Made by a program: the position numbers and the translations under genes. A DNA stretch of 64,000 nucleotides from Obrimoposthia wandeli (Eukaryota): positions 434,001 to 498,000 of the forward strand of contig CDROCS010000506.1 of the NCBI GenBank assembly GCA_977020255.1. Direction: 5' to 3'. Under the pieces are notes generated by a model. It did not search any database, had not been told where the DNA came from, and was given only the letters and a program-made list of their open reading frames with translations. Below, one piece after another: positions 58,473-64,000 of this stretch; position 1 is the first letter of the stretch, and every line of letters starts with the position of its first letter.

Positions 58473-59648
58473 TTATTTTTTAATTACTGGGGCAAAGCTA
58501 CGGCGTTGTAAAGCTTCAACATTTTCATCTTTTATTGTCGCCATATTACCTCTGGCAAGCGGGTTATCCTGCACAGGCTTAACCGCCACCTCTACCTCCT
58601 TATCGACCTCCACCTTTGCCGTCGATTTTAATGCTGCTTTAACATTACTTTTAGGAGCTATCTCGTTAACCTCAACGAGCGGATCATGCTCTATCGCGGG
58701 CACGTCTATATCAATCGGTAGCGATAAGTCTGCGACAGCTATACGTGAACCGCCAGCATCAGGTGTTAATGTATTAGGCTTCATAATATTCGAATTACTA
58801 TCGACTGGTTGTGATAAACCTGACACGGCTACCTTTGAAACACTCGTCTTAATACTGTTATTTTCTGAGATAGCATTATCTTCTGAGTTAGCTTTGTCAT
58901 TTTCTGAGTTAGCACTATTACTTTCGGAGATAGTACTGTTATTTTCTGAGATAGCACTATTATTTTCTGAAATAGGCGCGTTGACTTCACTCGGAGTCAC
59001 AACAGGAGTAATTTGATTGCCCCTAAACGTGGCGGCCCCCAAACCGGACAGTTTTTTATTCGGCTGAAACGCACCTTTATAATTAACGACAGGTTGCGGC
59101 TGGCTAACGGTAGTTACATTTCGCTTACCACTGAGCCCCAGTTTAGGAGAGGTAAATGTGAAAACCGCTAATTTATCATTCCAAACCTGTAAAATAGACA
59201 AATCTTGCTGCCATTGATCAGAGTCATTAGCGGCAAGATCATTAACCTGCATAAATGCCGATAGCTGGGTATTAGTGGTTTCAAATCGTTGATGTAACTG
59301 TTTTTGAACTAAGGGCCAATTCGTTCCTCCCGTCATAAAATAACGTCCACTATCCGCCCAATACTGATAAGCAATAACATCGTTAGTTTTATCGGCAGAC
59401 ATAGCTGCAAGCGCTTCAGCTAATCCTGCGTATTGCCACATATGACGGTTGCCTAACTTAGCTTCAGAACGTAAAAACACCAAGCTTAATTGATGCCATT
59501 GATTCGCGGCCAATTTATACTTGCCTTGGCCAAGATAATGACTGGCTTTACTGTAATATTTTAATTCCATATTCACAGGTTCAGCATACGCGGTAACTTG
59601 GTAACAACAGCAAGATATAACCAGTGCTTGCCAGCTTATTTTTATCAT
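58473..59648 (-). CDS. Secreted hypothetical protein: helical N-domain plus low-complexity tail
   Basis: Signal peptide ending AYA-E; ATG at 59648 forms an ATGA overlap with the upstream DUF3131 stop. Confidence 0.75.
   Translation of the reverse strand: MIKISWQALVISCCCYQVTAYAEPVNMELKYYSKASHYLGQGKYKLAANQWHQLSLVFLRSEAKLGNRHMWQYAGLAEALAAMSADKTNDVIAYQYWADSGRYFMTGGTNWPLVQKQLHQRFETTNTQLSAFMQVNDLAANDSDQWQQDLSILQVWNDKLAVFTFTSPKLGLSGKRNVTTVSQPQPVVNYKGAFQPNKKLSGLGAATFRGNQITPVVTPSEVNAPISENNSAISENNSTISESNSANSENDKANSEDNAISENNSIKTSVSKVAVSGLSQPVDSNSNIMKPNTLTPDAGGSRIAVADLSLPIDIDVPAIEHDPLVEVNEIAPKSNVKAALKSTAKVEVDKEVEVAVKPVQDNPLARGNMATIKDENVEALQRRSFAPVIKK
58854..58976. repeat. In-frame tandem repeat, 6 units (21 bp, one of 18 bp)
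   Basis: Encodes ISENNS-AISENNS-TISESNS-ANSENDK-ANSEDN-AISENNS. Confidence 0.9.
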
Positions 59649-61033
59649 TGAAATGTCTCCACATGACATTTTCCAGGGTGATTAAAGCGAGAGTTAAAAC
59701 GTACATCTCGGTGTTCTTTAGCTTTGCCTGGCTGATATAATTTACCATTGGCTTTATACAATAATGCCTCAAGTACACCTGCATTAGTTTTTAGCGTAAT
59801 ACTCTTTTCATAACTGGCGTTTAATTCATAACGTCCTTCGTACCAACCCCGCGCAGGATCATATAACTCCCTGACTAAAACCATCAGGCGGTCGGTATAA
59901 TCTGTCTTCCATAATGCCCACATTTGAAAAGCAACACGGGTAGACACTAATGCGAGTTCATCATAAACATTACCGTCTTCAGCAACGGTTAACCAAGGCG
60001 TACCTAAAGCATAGATACTGTCATAGACAAAATAAGGTTCGCCTTCGACGACATGATCACCACGCGCCGTATAAATACGTTCTTCATCCCAACGAGACTC
60101 TTGGACACGGTAAACAGCATCGGCCATTGCCGAGAGTACTTCATCAGAATGGTAACTATCCAGAGAACCGGTATCAGTAATGCCATCCCAGTTAAACTCT
60201 AATCCGAGCTGTAAATAAGGAGTGCTCATCACCGGTCTTAACACGTTGTAGTGACGAGGATCGCGGCCATCAAAGAGTAAATCAATACCATTAATGGTAG
60301 CAACATCATAAGGGTCTACTCGCATACTCTTAGCTGGCACGATTTGCCAGTCTAGATAACCGTATGAGCTATACTCTTCAACACCTAAACGTCCCTCTTG
60401 GAAGCGCTGTGGCTGACCGTTAACAATCGAACCGCCAAACAATGAACCTTCTTCATTTACCAGCTCACAAAAATTCCAACGTAATACCGCTTTGTCTACG
60501 TATTCTGAAAATTCTTGATTGCGTTGCTTAACCAGCGCTAACGCAATTAATAATCGACCGACATCAACAGATGACCAACCAATATCATTCGGTTGCATGC
60601 CATAATCCACCATCTGTCCCGTACTTGTGGAATAGGCGATATTAGGCACTGACAATTGGCTTAAAGGCATCTCGACCAAAAAGCTAATGACCAGCGACAA
60701 GCGTTCATCATGCTCTTTAGTCGTGATCAATTCGAACTCTTGAGCGGCCATCAACGCAATTAAATAATCGGCAATCGCACTCATATTAGTACTCGGATAA
60801 TTGTCCAGAGAATTGACCAAGCCAGTTTTTAGTTGGGTATTATTCTCCACGTAGAGCCAAGCAGTTTGCGCCCACTGCATCTCGTCTTCATTTAATGCAC
60901 CGAAGCGCCCCTGACGGATTACTTGAGATGCACTAAATGATGTAATCCCCTCTTCCACGCTTTGGTACACAACCCCACATGAGGTTAATAATACTGCAGA
61001 GCATGCCATCATTAGTTTGCTCAACATTGACAC
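59645..61033 (-). CDS. DUF3131 domain lipoprotein, paralogue C (degenerate conserved residues)
   Basis: Lipobox LTSC; AW.Y..NN....TGL, IGWSS.DVGR, EGRLG.EEY, PYFVY, GWYEGRYE, TNAG.LE motifs shared with its neighbours. Confidence 0.82.
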   Translation of the reverse strand: MSMLSKLMMACSAVLLTSCGVVYQSVEEGITSFSASQVIRQGRFGALNEDEMQWAQTAWLYVENNTQLKTGLVNSLDNYPSTNMSAIADYLIALMAAQEFELITTKEHDERLSLVISFLVEMPLSQLSVPNIAYSTSTGQMVDYGMQPNDIGWSSVDVGRLLIALALVKQRNQEFSEYVDKAVLRWNFCELVNEEGSLFGGSIVNGQPQRFQEGRLGVEEYSSYGYLDWQIVPAKSMRVDPYDVATINGIDLLFDGRDPRHYNVLRPVMSTPYLQLGLEFNWDGITDTGSLDSYHSDEVLSAMADAVYRVQESRWDEERIYTARGDHVVEGEPYFVYDSIYALGTPWLTVAEDGNVYDELALVSTRVAFQMWALWKTDYTDRLMVLVRELYDPARGWYEGRYELNASYEKSITLKTNAGVLEALLYKANGKLYQPGKAKEHRDVRFNSRFNHPGKCHVETFQ

Positions 61034-61060: not shown

Positions 61061-62446
61061 TTAGATTTTACGAGGTAAGCACTTTCCCTCATAACCAAAT
61101 GGTGATTCTAATGCTTTATCCCATAAACTCGGTAACGGCTTACTTTGATAACGCATCAATTTACCTTGTTGTTTGAATAATAATATTTCCAATAAAATAC
61201 CATTATTATTTGATGTGAAAGTATTAATTAAGCCAGTACCATTTTCAAAGATACCTTCATAGAAGCCTTTTTCACGGTCATAAAGATGAGAAATGTGATC
61301 AAACAACAGATCTGTATATTCCGTATCCCATAATGCCCAAATACCCATTGCGCCTTTGACTGCTACCGCAGAGTATTGTGGTAAATATTCACCAGTTTCG
61401 GATATCGTATTCCACGCATAGCCATCAGTATAAAGCGTGTCATAGACAAAATAAGGCGCACTCGCTAACTGATGTTCCGTACGTGCAGTAATAATACCCG
61501 TTGCTTCATATCTGGCTTCTTGAACACGATAAATCTGCAGAGCGAATTCAGCCATCCATCCATTTGAATATGACGTGTCCGGACCTGAATGGTCTGTCGA
61601 TAAATCCCAACCTAATTCGATACCATCAAGGACATAACTTTCAGTTACCACGTAACTGTGTGCCTTTAATTTACGCGGATCACGGGTATCGTAAGGTACA
61701 TCATAACCAAATAAGTTAATGGTATTATAAGGTTCAGGCATTGACGCTGTTTTCGTATCAAAGCCCCATAACTGGAAACCTTTGGCAGCGTATTCTTCAT
61801 AACCTAAGCGGCCTTCTTGTAAATACTGAACAGGTTTACCTGGTTCTAATAATGCACCAAACATCAAACCGTCTTCATCAACAATATTACAAAAATTCCA
61901 ACGTAATACCGCAGAATCAATACCTGTGGCATATTCCGGATAACGATTTTTAATTAAATGCAGCCAAATTAACAAACGCCCTAAATCCAGTGCTGAATAA
62001 CCAATTTCGCCCGGCTGATTGGCATAATCTACTTTCGCTGCATTTTGCGTGTTATAGGCTTTATTTGGCATCTCACCACGGAATAAATCCATGGTGTTTA
62101 ACGTGGTGATAAAGCGAATTAGACGGCGGTCATACTCTTCTTTTTTTATAATACCGAGTTCTAGTGCACTCGTCATACCCGCTAAATACGAAGCCGCATC
62201 CCACCATGTTACTGATGGGTAATTATTTACCGCATTCACTAGCCCCGTAGATTCTTGATAATTATTCTCAAAATATTTCCATGCGATACGCGCCATGTCC
62301 ATTTCTTTCTCGGTCAAATCACCTTGTCTTGCAGGTGGAATTGACCAATGATCTTTTCTATCAACGATGTCTTCTGAAAAACTATTATATTTACTGCCAC
62401 AACCAGAGACCAGTAACCCTGCCAGGCAAACCATCGCTATCCGCAT
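61061..62446 (-). CDS. DUF3131 domain lipoprotein, paralogue B
   Basis: Lipobox VSGC; AWKYFENN, YPSVTWWD, PNKAYNT, EGRLGYEEY, VTESY, TARTEH, NNNG.LLE. Confidence 0.85.
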   Translation of the reverse strand: MRIAMVCLAGLLVSGCGSKYNSFSEDIVDRKDHWSIPPARQGDLTEKEMDMARIAWKYFENNYQESTGLVNAVNNYPSVTWWDAASYLAGMTSALELGIIKKEEYDRRLIRFITTLNTMDLFRGEMPNKAYNTQNAAKVDYANQPGEIGYSALDLGRLLIWLHLIKNRYPEYATGIDSAVLRWNFCNIVDEDGLMFGALLEPGKPVQYLQEGRLGYEEYAAKGFQLWGFDTKTASMPEPYNTINLFGYDVPYDTRDPRKLKAHSYVVTESYVLDGIELGWDLSTDHSGPDTSYSNGWMAEFALQIYRVQEARYEATGIITARTEHQLASAPYFVYDTLYTDGYAWNTISETGEYLPQYSAVAVKGAMGIWALWDTEYTDLLFDHISHLYDREKGFYEGIFENGTGLINTFTSNNNGILLEILLFKQQGKLMRYQSKPLPSLWDKALESPFGYEGKCLPRKI

Positions 62447-62470: not shown

Positions 62471-63787
62471 CTATTTCGCACCAACACGTAATAATGTACC
62501 ATTTTGAACATAAGCAAGAGACTCTAAGATAATGCCATTGGTATTTGCTGTAATTGCTTTGTTAAGACGGCCATCACTTTCATAACGACCTGAATACCAA
62601 CCTTTTTGTGCTGAGTATAGGCTTTTAACATCACCCATTAACAGGCTTGTATACTCAGTATCGTACAAGGCGTACCAACCGAAGGATGCTTTAGTAGATA
62701 ATGTCTTTAAATGTGACGCATCTTCACCTGTATCTGAAATTGCATTCCATTCTTTACCGTCAGAAAACACCGTGTTATAAACAAAATAAGGCGCAACATC
62801 GACATTATCTTCACTCACAGCAGTTAAGATACCTAAGCGCTCGTAACGGTTTTCTTGCGCTTTATAAACACGATAGGCAAAGATTTCTGAAATACTGTCA
62901 GCACCAAATTCTAAACTATCTAAAATATATGACTCACTCACCACGTAGTTATGTGCATGGTACTTAGCCGGATCACGTCTATCTGTTGGAATATCAACAC
63001 CATCAATATTAACCATTTCTAAATAATCAATATATTTCATCGCGTTAAATACATCGAGACCCATTAACGATAACGCTTTAGAGGCATATTCTTCATAGCC
63101 AATACGTCCTTCTTGCACCAGTTCTAAACCACCTGTTTTTGCTGGGCGAGAACCATATAAATAGCCTTTGTCGATCAAGCTGCCAACATGCCAGTGATTC
63201 AATACATCGTTCACTTGCTTGTTATAGTCAGGGTATTGCCAAATAAGAATGTTTAACGGCACCAAAATACGGCCAATATCAATCGCAGACCAACCAATAC
63301 CATCAGCCACAGGGTTATTTGCATAATCCACCATTTCAAGAGTTTTGGTGTTATAAGCTTTGTTTGGTAGCTTGCCTTCGATCAAGGGTAAGCGCGCTAA
63401 TGTGTGTAGCACTTTCTCCATTTTTAAATCAAATTCCGCTTGGCTAACGATATTTAATTTTTCAGCGCCAATAAGCCCCATTAAATAAGACGCAGTATCC
63501 CACATCGTTGTAGAAGGATAGCCATCAACAGAATTTACAAGTCCGGTATTCGGCTGCACATTATTATCAAAATAACGCCAAGCAGTCTTGGCCCACTCAT
63601 ACTCTTCTGCTGTTAAAATACGGCTTTCACGCAGTGGAATAGGCTCTTCCGTGGTAAAAGATAGATTACCTAGTACTTGCGTGTACTCACGTGTTTCAAT
63701 TGTAAAAGCAATGACTAACGCAGTCACTAGACCACCAATAAATACAAAATGGTGACGCGCTTTAATTAAGTTTTGTTTAAACGCCAT
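62471..63787 (-). CDS. DUF3131 domain protein with N-terminal membrane anchor, paralogue A
   Basis: ATG at 63787 with GAGGG SD; TM segment FVFIGGLVTALVIAFTI; AWRYFDNN, YPSTTMWD, EGRIGYEEY, VSESY, TAVSED. Confidence 0.85.
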   Translation of the reverse strand: MAFKQNLIKARHHFVFIGGLVTALVIAFTIETREYTQVLGNLSFTTEEPIPLRESRILTAEEYEWAKTAWRYFDNNVQPNTGLVNSVDGYPSTTMWDTASYLMGLIGAEKLNIVSQAEFDLKMEKVLHTLARLPLIEGKLPNKAYNTKTLEMVDYANNPVADGIGWSAIDIGRILVPLNILIWQYPDYNKQVNDVLNHWHVGSLIDKGYLYGSRPAKTGGLELVQEGRIGYEEYASKALSLMGLDVFNAMKYIDYLEMVNIDGVDIPTDRRDPAKYHAHNYVVSESYILDSLEFGADSISEIFAYRVYKAQENRYERLGILTAVSEDNVDVAPYFVYNTVFSDGKEWNAISDTGEDASHLKTLSTKASFGWYALYDTEYTSLLMGDVKSLYSAQKGWYSGRYESDGRLNKAITANTNGIILESLAYVQNGTLLRVGAK

Positions 63788-64000
63788 ATTCAAATCCCTC
63801 TGATTCTTGTTCTTGTTTTTTTTCTGTTGGTGGAGTCCAAAATGCGGCAGCAATCATGCCCCACATCGCCATCATATTATTCACAATCCAAAAACTATTC
63901 AGTACTAACCCGCCAAACGAGTAATCACCAAAACTGCCCGTTACATAGCTAAACCAGGCAAAACACATACTGAATAAACTTAATACGAACACCCCTATTT
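63777..64000 (-). CDS. C-terminal TM helices of a probable processive GT2 glycan synthase (BcsA-like), runs off the window edge
   Basis: Frame is open to the edge; two hydrophobic helices including LVLNSFWIVNNMMAM, resembling the N..W...N last helix of BcsA-type synthases; overlaps the start of DUF3131-A. Confidence 0.55.
   Translation of the reverse strand, partial: IGVFVLSLFSMCFAWFSYVTGSFGDYSFGGLVLNSFWIVNNMMAMWGMIAAAFWTPPTEKKQEQESEGFEYGV

Follow-up and report, generated by a model that had tools for sequence, protein, structure and literature searches.

The 64,000-nucleotide stretch analysed here (the window; positions 434,001 to 498,000 of contig CDROCS010000506.1 in the Obrimoposthia wandeli assembly GCA_977020255.1) is part of a 3.78-Mb bacterial contig (G000:C506) within a 1.35-Gb assembly, and the nearest relatives of its proteins come from Moritella (91-93% identity). 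Its minus strand carries three tandem open reading frames, referred to below as paralogues A, B and C, each matching the DUF3131 family (PF11329) across the entire 367-position model. Paralogue A (62471..63853) encodes a 460-amino-acid (aa) protein with an N-terminal membrane anchor (482.4 bits), and paralogue B (61061..62446) a 461-aa lipoprotein with a lipobox (410.6 bits), which is the fully conserved, "canonical" copy. Paralogue C (59645..61033), the subject of this study, has a GTG start and encodes a predicted lipoprotein of 462 aa, whose residues 53-430 match positions 1-367 of the profile with 324.7 bits against a gathering cut-off of 20.3. An original prediction, made from the DNA letters alone, held that C had lost three conserved acidic or aromatic positions kept in A and B and was a probable pseudoenzyme.

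An AAGGA ribosome-binding site precedes the GTG of C, and an ATG follows two codons further on. The encoded signal peptide (60977..61033; all features of C lie on the minus strand) ends, as read from the sequence, in the lipobox LLTSC, as expected of a bacterial lipoprotein, and its Cys19 is matched by an aligned Cys in 67 of the 79 C-clade proteins of the survey described below. The motifs originally quoted for C and their coordinates are exact, and aligning A, B and C reproduced every one of them: YPSTTMWD, VVSESY and TAVSED in A and YPSVTWWD, VVTESY and TARTEH in B correspond in C to YPSTNMSA (residues 79-86; 60776..60799), VMSTPY (268-273; 60215..60232) and TARGDH (322-327; 60053..60070), and GxEEY is present in all three. 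At the N-terminus of inner helix 2, C therefore has Ser85 and Ala86 in place of the Trp-Asp pair found in A and B, Thr271 replaces their invariant Glu as the first residue of inner helix 8, and Asp326 occupies their Glu position, the likely equivalent of E1442, the nucleophile of GH189 (the cyclisation domain of the cyclic glucan synthase Cgs). In TLKTNAG (413-419; 59777..59797), at the N-terminus of inner helix 12, Lys415 takes the place of an Asn that A and B conserve, and IADYL (60761..60775) contains Asp89, a C-clade-specific acid one helical turn past the lost Asp. Other features have been kept. In WSSVDVGR (153-160; 60554..60577), Asp157 is the equivalent of the general-base candidate of the SGL clan, to which GH189 belongs, and Arg160 is invariant; in QEGRLGVEEY (212-221; 60371..60400), Glu213 is the probable equivalent of the general acid (acid/base), followed by the Glu pair of GxEEY. 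Lastly, Cys189 (NFC, 60467-60475) and Cys456 (GKC, 59666-59674) are found in 79/79 and 76/79 C-clade proteins, respectively, in 47 and 46 of 77 B proteins, and neither occurs in A; they likely form a periplasmic disulfide tying down the C-terminal tail.

Scanning one genome per species uncovered 79 loci of this kind, 72 of which have three DUF3131 genes in the order A-B-C. They come from Vibrionaceae, Shewanella, Ferrimonas, Yersinia ruckeri, Erwinia, Pantoea, Burkholderia and Noviherbaspirillum, and, in further phyla, from Acidobacteriota, Bacteroidota, Desulfobacterota and one Sericytochromatia genome. The A, B and C proteins form three clades with supports of 0.98, 0.88 and 1.0; B and C are sister clades (support 0.997) and A groups with a fourth type, D. 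Orthologues of C share 60-93% identity across Vibrionaceae and Shewanella and 40-50% across phyla, and 72 of 74 A proteins have a hydrophobic N-terminal stretch without a lipobox. Published data add to this distribution: trio-type DUF3131 genes are present in accessory islands of Klebsiella pneumoniae (PMC12974863), and in Shewanella piezotolerans WP3, swp_2164, 2165, 2169 and 2170 are co-expressed under salt shock in a cluster enriched for DUF3131 (PMC8371737), which hints that the glucan of the operon is osmoregulated.

The survey tells which of the substitutions characterise the C lineage as a whole. Where A and B have the Asp of the WD motif (71/74 and 77/77), an acid is found in 25 of 26 D-type proteins and in 2 of 79 C proteins; where they have the Glu of SESY (68/74 and 77/77), an acid is found in 25 of 26 D-type proteins and in none of the 79 C proteins, which instead have Thr (39), Met (15), Leu (9), Gly (6), Ala (4) and others. 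Since A, B and the D type keep both acids and C is sister to B, the two losses are derived. For these two acids, the predicted loss is thus consistent among the C orthologues, but the other positions proved variable: the Trp of WD, present in all A (74/74) and B (77/77) and in 23 of 26 D-type proteins, survives in 37 of the 79 C proteins, and the third change, at the TARxE acid, is a conservative Glu/Asp exchange, the C clade having Asp 39 times and Glu 32 times (Glu in 68/74 A and 77/77 B; 20 Glu and 2 Asp among 26 D-type proteins). The helix-12 Asn, at least 90% conserved in A and in B, is most often Lys (24), Ser (23), Thr (11) or Gln (10) in the C clade. These data show that, after the B/C duplication, the C lineage lost the WD Asp, the SESY Glu, the helix-12 Asn and often the Trp.

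The same lineage also gained residues, namely Asp89, Tyr178 and usually Arg319; of the 79 C proteins, 75 have Asp and 3 have Glu at position 89, which is Ser in 74/74 A and 72/77 B proteins. In addition, C keeps Asp157 (68 Asp, 7 Glu and 4 His in the clade), Glu213 (67 Glu, 10 Asp), Glu219/220 and an acid at position 326. Paralogue A has itself departed from the common pattern: 15 positions at which B and C are conserved have been lost from it, among them the Arg of TAR (Val in A), the Asp of VYD (Asn) and the Glu of YEG (Ser), several of its Trp are Tyr or Met, and it has neither the Cys pair nor the C-terminal tail. Opposing A and B as catalysts to C as a non-catalyst, as originally proposed, is therefore too simple; the pattern is one of a canonical copy, B, and two copies, A and C, that are degenerate in different ways.

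Rates of change also set C apart. Compared with the copies of a related strain on another bacterial contig of the assembly (C2070), the ratio of non-synonymous to synonymous substitution rates (dN/dS) is 0.010 for C, 0.031 for A and ~0.08 for B, so that purifying selection on the entire C gene is strong. When changes at 12 pocket sites were counted per clade by Fitch parsimony, C nonetheless displayed 6-19 changes per site, compared with 0 in B and 0-6 in A. Position 86 changed 18 times and position 271 17 times in C, i.e., at the median rate of C, and neither changed in B. Asp and Glu were also swapped in C 6 times at the equivalent of the acid, 6 times at that of the base and 11 times at that of the nucleophile, which is unusual for precise catalysis and favours weak or no catalysis in C. 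C is the most divergent of the three copies overall, with a mean pairwise identity of 0.48 (0.64 for B) and 88 columns that are at least 90% conserved (167 in B). Within the clade, Arg160, Thr322, Asp338, Asn417, Glu279 and Glu403 never change and Arg324 and Glu399 change once each; many Trp and Tyr stay fixed, as does the fold, and many pocket aromatics drift freely. C is the only one of the three copies in which constraint on the pocket has relaxed.

The AlphaFold2 model of C is an (alpha/alpha)6 barrel with a mean predicted local distance difference test score (pLDDT) of 90.3 and a predicted template modelling score (pTM) of 0.88. Its best match in the PDB is the Cgs cyclisation domain (GH189, 8wy1; Z 33.5, root-mean-square deviation 2.8 A over 349 residues, 17% identity), followed by Cgs structures from cryo-electron microscopy (Z 28-30), GH144 (28-30), GH192 (8xuj, 27.3), GH194 (8xuk, 26.7) and GH162 (22.8). 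All top 15 PDB entries are beta-1,2-glucan enzymes of the SGL clan (Z 22.7-33.5, 345-361 residues aligned), and Foldseek E-values against structures of this clan range from 1.7e-10 to 2e-6; the modelled barrel of C is thus superposable on those that define the clan (GH144/162/189/192/193/194). At the level of families, the picture is different. GH189 proteins are domains of a multidomain cyclic glucan synthase with a C-terminal half belonging to PF10091, and C is a single-domain protein for which neither PF10091 nor PF06165 yields a match, even at E = 10; A and B likewise never match PF10091. Conversely, the PF11329 hidden Markov model (HMM) matches Cgs cyclisation domains over profile positions 2-91 only, the remainder of these domains matching PF10091. 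Direct sequence searches of the PDB with A, B, C or a 62-sequence profile returned a weak N-terminal Cgs match only and left the C-terminal half unmapped, and a search with the Cgs domain for GH193-type bridging sequences returned only Cgs fragments. An identity of Pfam DUF3131 with GH193 was also considered, as the founder of GH193, SkSGL, is labelled "DUF3131 domain-containing protein" by NCBI (PMC12102758). This identity was rejected, since the HMM covers only positions 2-91 in Cgs and the motifs of the trio, such as EGRLG and PYFVYD, do not occur in the sequence sets contained in the accessible part of that paper; by analogy with Cgs, the label of SkSGL probably rests on a partial N-terminal match. 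A literature search found no paper characterising full-length DUF3131. Judging from the modelled fold, we conclude that the trio would constitute an unstudied branch of the SGL clan that is structurally closest to GH189.

In (alpha/alpha)6 barrels, the six inner helices run in parallel and the active site lies at their N-termini. In the model of C, residues 85/86 open helix 84-99, Asp157 opens helix 155-171, Glu213 to Glu220 precede and open helix 218-227, Thr271 opens helix 271-280, TARGDH follows helix 298-318, in the loop after helix 9, and Lys415 and Asn417 open helix 414-429. By this topology, all substituted positions would lie on the catalytic face, in inner helices 2 and 8 and the loop after helix 9 for those highlighted at the outset, in line with their predicted placement in the active-site cleft. 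Residue homology to Cgs is solid for the first ~190 residues and hhalign against GH144 is reliable to about residue 175 (95.5-96% probability for the deep Cgs alignment, 83% for GH144 over the N-terminal third). Indices of 8wy1 were tied to the numbering of the Cgs enzyme TiCGS through a Cgs query, and the numbering of the GH144 enzyme CpSGL was tied through a GH144 query. In this part, Ser85/Ala86 align with the Thr/Asn of the TSPTN motif of Cgs (TiCGS 1062/1063; hhalign 96%), and Asp157 with TiCGS D1127 (96%) and CpSGL E142 (83%), as well as with SkSGL D160 by the SxVDxG motif. Two independent profile-profile alignments thus place Asp157 at the position where inverting families have an acid (CpSGL E142/SkSGL D160), and mutagenesis in GH144, GH192 and GH194 has validated the residue at this position as the candidate general base (PMC12102758).

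For the C-terminal halves, hhalign against shallow or deep Cgs alignments, with or without the Cgs insertion and in local or global mode, was never significant (0.1-0.6% for the halves alone), and gapless profile scans, which are low-powered (the known helix-4 register ranked third of 497 offsets), were used only to choose among collinear offsets. Three collinear local registers nevertheless recur. The Glu213 of QEGR falls on E1356, the Glu within the ASEAR motif of Cgs (z 2.9, hhalign non-significant there), and follows the second strand of a hairpin in the model; this Glu is the general acid of the clan (XcSGL E239, CpSGL E211, TiCGS E1356), for which Glu213 is the best collinear match, in a weak register. 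The helix-8 Glu position, Thr271 in C, falls on TiCGS F1399, next to E1400 (z 2.1, weak). The TARxE acid falls on the GH189 nucleophile E1442 (z 3.1, the best local offset), in a register that was the same in three hhalign runs, none of them significant, and both families have a conserved Gln 15 residues upstream of this acid (Gln311 in C; before E1442 in 8wy1). In addition, the Asn position occupied by Lys415 in C falls on TiCGS H1536 (z 3.5), and candidates for the clan Phe (XcSGL F286) and Tyr (XcSGL Y367) are Tyr273 and the PYFVY cluster of C, in an uncertain register. The two-glutamate, GH189-like mechanism that had been suggested is therefore plausible for A and B, the TARxE acid being the best-scoring equivalent of E1442 with its Gln at -15, but the acid would be the Glu of QEGR and not one of GxEEY.

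The trio belongs to a sugar-polymer operon of a marine bacterium. Upstream of A and in the same orientation lie genes for a response-regulator/PP2C phosphatase, a STAS protein, a nucleotidyl transferase, an RsbW-like kinase, GH2 and GH9 proteins and a BcsA-like GT2 (621 aa); Yersinia ruckeri has the same core operon, with the partner switch, the nucleotidyl transferase, GT2, A, B, C and GH2. A gene for a 398-aa Ser/Asn-rich secreted protein, and then one for a second GT2, follow C. The secreted protein (58473-59669) has Ser/Asn repeats of the ISENNS type and no match in Pfam or NCBIfam, and its gene overlaps the end of C by 25 bases. The gene following C is GH2 in Yersinia ruckeri and a D-type DUF3131 in other phyla, in many of which a D-type protein of 650-790 aa is encoded directly 3' of C. 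On the present contig, a fourth DUF3131 paralogue, of the D type (528 aa), is encoded on the plus strand ~20 kb beyond the window (L010:2910-4496 = G000:C506:517910-519496), where its neighbours are GH16 and a type I secretion ABC protein of the PrtD type; this paralogue retains the WD Asp, the helix-8 acid and the TARxE acid, and has GYLQY in place of GxEEY. The neighbouring ABC transporter had been considered as an NdvA-like glucan exporter, and this was rejected, as it is a type I secretion ATPase of the PrtD type.

Several bacterial contigs (C506, C2070, C1674, C4215) are present in the 1.35-Gb assembly and are associates or contaminants of the sequenced organism. Two to three of them, from related Moritella-like or Vibrionaceae-like replicons, carry the same operon, and the GH144 protein encoded on one flavobacterial contig shares 100% identity with a protein of Lacinutrix undariae. 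On C2070 (G000:C2070:8304-9438; loci L001/L006), B is split into two open frames of 276 and 206 aa, with A and C intact, and a low-depth contig of run X1 has a 1-base deletion within B, at window position 62377; these breaks are either real frameshifts in one strain or assembly errors. Contigs at least 99% identical across A, B, C and the downstream gene were found in a marine metatranscriptome library, and one contig of a second RNA library spans the B/C junction. They are weak support for expression of C, as contigs in such libraries do not prove transcription; the raw RNA reads of the host (X22) include none on this stretch and hence provide no test of expression.

Taken together, these observations lead us to favour, with a probability of roughly one half, a reading of C as a conserved, catalytically degenerate (weak or non-catalytic) glucan-binding partner, since its substitutions are ancient, clade-wide and located on the catalytic face, the constraint on its pocket is relaxed, and residues of a binding type stay conserved together with the Cys pair, all of which speaks for such a partner over an ordinary enzyme. 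C would then be the functional third member of an ancient, co-inherited periplasmic DUF3131 trio that sits beside a cellulose-synthase-like GT2 glucan synthase, with A presumably anchored in the inner membrane and B and C predicted to be lipoproteins. It would still bind the nascent beta-glucan in its barrel cleft and would perform only weakly, or no longer, the chemistry of B, probably a transglycosylation or hydrolysis of the GH189 type. C may thereby assist the catalytic copies by binding, by handling the chain or as a scaffold, in the way the low-activity OpgG stands beside the active OpgD. This retains from the original prediction the idea of a non-catalyst, which the ancient losses and the relaxed pocket favour, but qualifies its grounds: the loss of two acids that are invariant in B would make C a candidate pseudoenzyme, and Asp157 and probably Glu213, equivalents of residues proven to be catalytic in the clan, are kept.

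Several points weigh against seeing C as such a degenerate partner. At least 90% of the C clade has an acid at each of the three positions that align with proven catalytic residues of related families (Asp157, Glu213 and Asp/Glu326); the nearly invariant Asp89, beside the lost Asp, could be a relocated catalytic group; and A has lost as many B-conserved positions, so that pocket losses may mark specialisation and not inactivity. Pseudoenzyme status is moreover unprovable from sequence, as full-length DUF3131 has so far only candidate catalytic residues, and the mapping of the C-terminal half onto GH189 is statistically non-significant, hhalign being reliable for the first ~190 residues only. 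The main rival reading is a true enzyme with rewired chemistry or specificity, in which the acid would have moved from position 86 to 89 and Arg319 and Lys415 been gained, and which would catalyse a different step on the same glucan, e.g., hydrolysis versus transfer, another linkage or ring closure. A different chemistry of C had also been envisaged from the start, and a clade-specific Asp89 so near the lost Asp, at a distance of one helical turn, is as compatible with remodelling as with loss. An acidic position 89 in 78 of the 79 C proteins, against Ser in A and B, the acids kept at 157, 213 and 326 in at least 90% of the clade, the very strong purifying selection (dN/dS 0.010), the complementary sets of B-conserved acids lost by A and C, which resemble subfunctionalisation, and the fact that the base or nucleophile position differs between families of the SGL clan (PMC12102758) all go in this direction. 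However, precise catalysis is hard to reconcile with the repeated Asp/Glu swaps at the acid (6) and nucleophile (11) equivalents and with the free drift of many pocket aromatics, none of which is seen in B, and we regard a rewired enzyme as a serious but less probable explanation.

It is improbable, although still worth weighing, that C serves mostly for structure or tethering, as an outer-membrane lipoprotein docking B, A or an export pore, with a cleft that no longer binds sugar. Such a function would account for the lipobox and the conserved Cys pair, the constant gene order with A and B, and the highest divergence of the three copies (mean pairwise identity of 0.48 versus 0.64 for B), but a pure scaffold would have no need for the invariance of the cleft-facing Arg160, Thr322, Asp338, Asn417 and several Trp, nor for the near-invariance of Arg324. 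As for a decaying gene or an annotation artefact, for which nothing speaks beyond the substitutions themselves, its chance is negligible: C has an open frame with a full-length HMM match and orthologues at 60-93% and 40-50% identity, and its dN/dS of 0.010 and the strict A-B-C order in 72 loci over several phyla mean that decay is excluded.

A broader scheme can also be considered, which is speculative and, as a whole, rather unlikely. A, B and C would work as one periplasmic machine, inherited together and akin to the GH189 cyclisation domain but separated from the synthase; B would be the catalyst, and A and C, degenerate in complementary ways, would be subunits holding the chain and measuring it. 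With the BcsA-like GT2, this machine would provide Vibrionaceae, Shewanella, Klebsiella, Yersinia, Burkholderia and other phyla with another route to (possibly cyclic) periplasmic or secreted glucans of the beta-1,2 type, one that depends on neither Cgs nor OpgGH. Should this GH189-like reading be true, the chemistry of glucan cyclisation or transfer could act outside the giant Cgs synthase. More generally, full-length DUF3131 would be an uncharacterised branch of the beta-1,2-glucanase clan that many bacteria, including associates of fish and plants (Yersinia ruckeri, Erwinia, Burkholderia), carry as a fixed trio next to a cellulose-synthase-like enzyme. The non-equivalence of the copies, B being frozen and A and C having each lost different pocket residues, also guides which of them to assay for catalysis and which for binding or scaffolding.

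Comparison with known systems places the trio within the SGL clan and at some distance from each of its characterised members. With the GH189 domain of TiCGS (8wy1), C has in common a helix-2 motif of the TSPTN type and the Asp of SxVDxG, and the positions of A and B that score best as equivalents of E1356, (F1399/)E1400 and E1442 are occupied by Glu. In contrast, C is a stand-alone periplasmic lipoprotein and GH189 a cytoplasmic domain of a 2,800-aa synthase; C also lacks an insertion of ~130 residues and any PF10091 match in its C-terminal half, and has Thr at the helix-8 position, Asp at the nucleophile equivalent and Lys for H1536. The GH193 enzyme SkSGL of Sanguibacter keddieii, an inverting endo-beta-1,2-glucanase (PMC12102758), was compared by motif only: its catalytic D160 in SSVDNGW and its E246 in VSETR correspond to Asp157 in WSSVDVGR and Glu213 in QEGR of C, whereas its TSPTN and WGFSP motifs, with a Pro at the nucleophile position as in an inverting enzyme, distinguish it from the trio. 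The GH144 enzyme CpSGL (PDB 5GZH/5GZK) has the same fold as C (Z 29, ~355 residues aligned), and its mutagenesis-validated E142 aligns with Asp157; sequence identity to it is only 10-13%, there is no PF10091 match, and GH144 has a Gly-Gly at the Trp-Asp position of A and B. A functional analogy, drawn from the literature, is offered by E. coli OpgG and OpgD (GH186), which are unrelated to C and B in fold and family. According to PMC10514313, these are paralogous periplasmic glucan enzymes, of which OpgD acts as a beta-1,2-glucanase, whereas OpgG, although its activity is low, is indispensable for making the glucan; B and C would stand to each other in a similar way.

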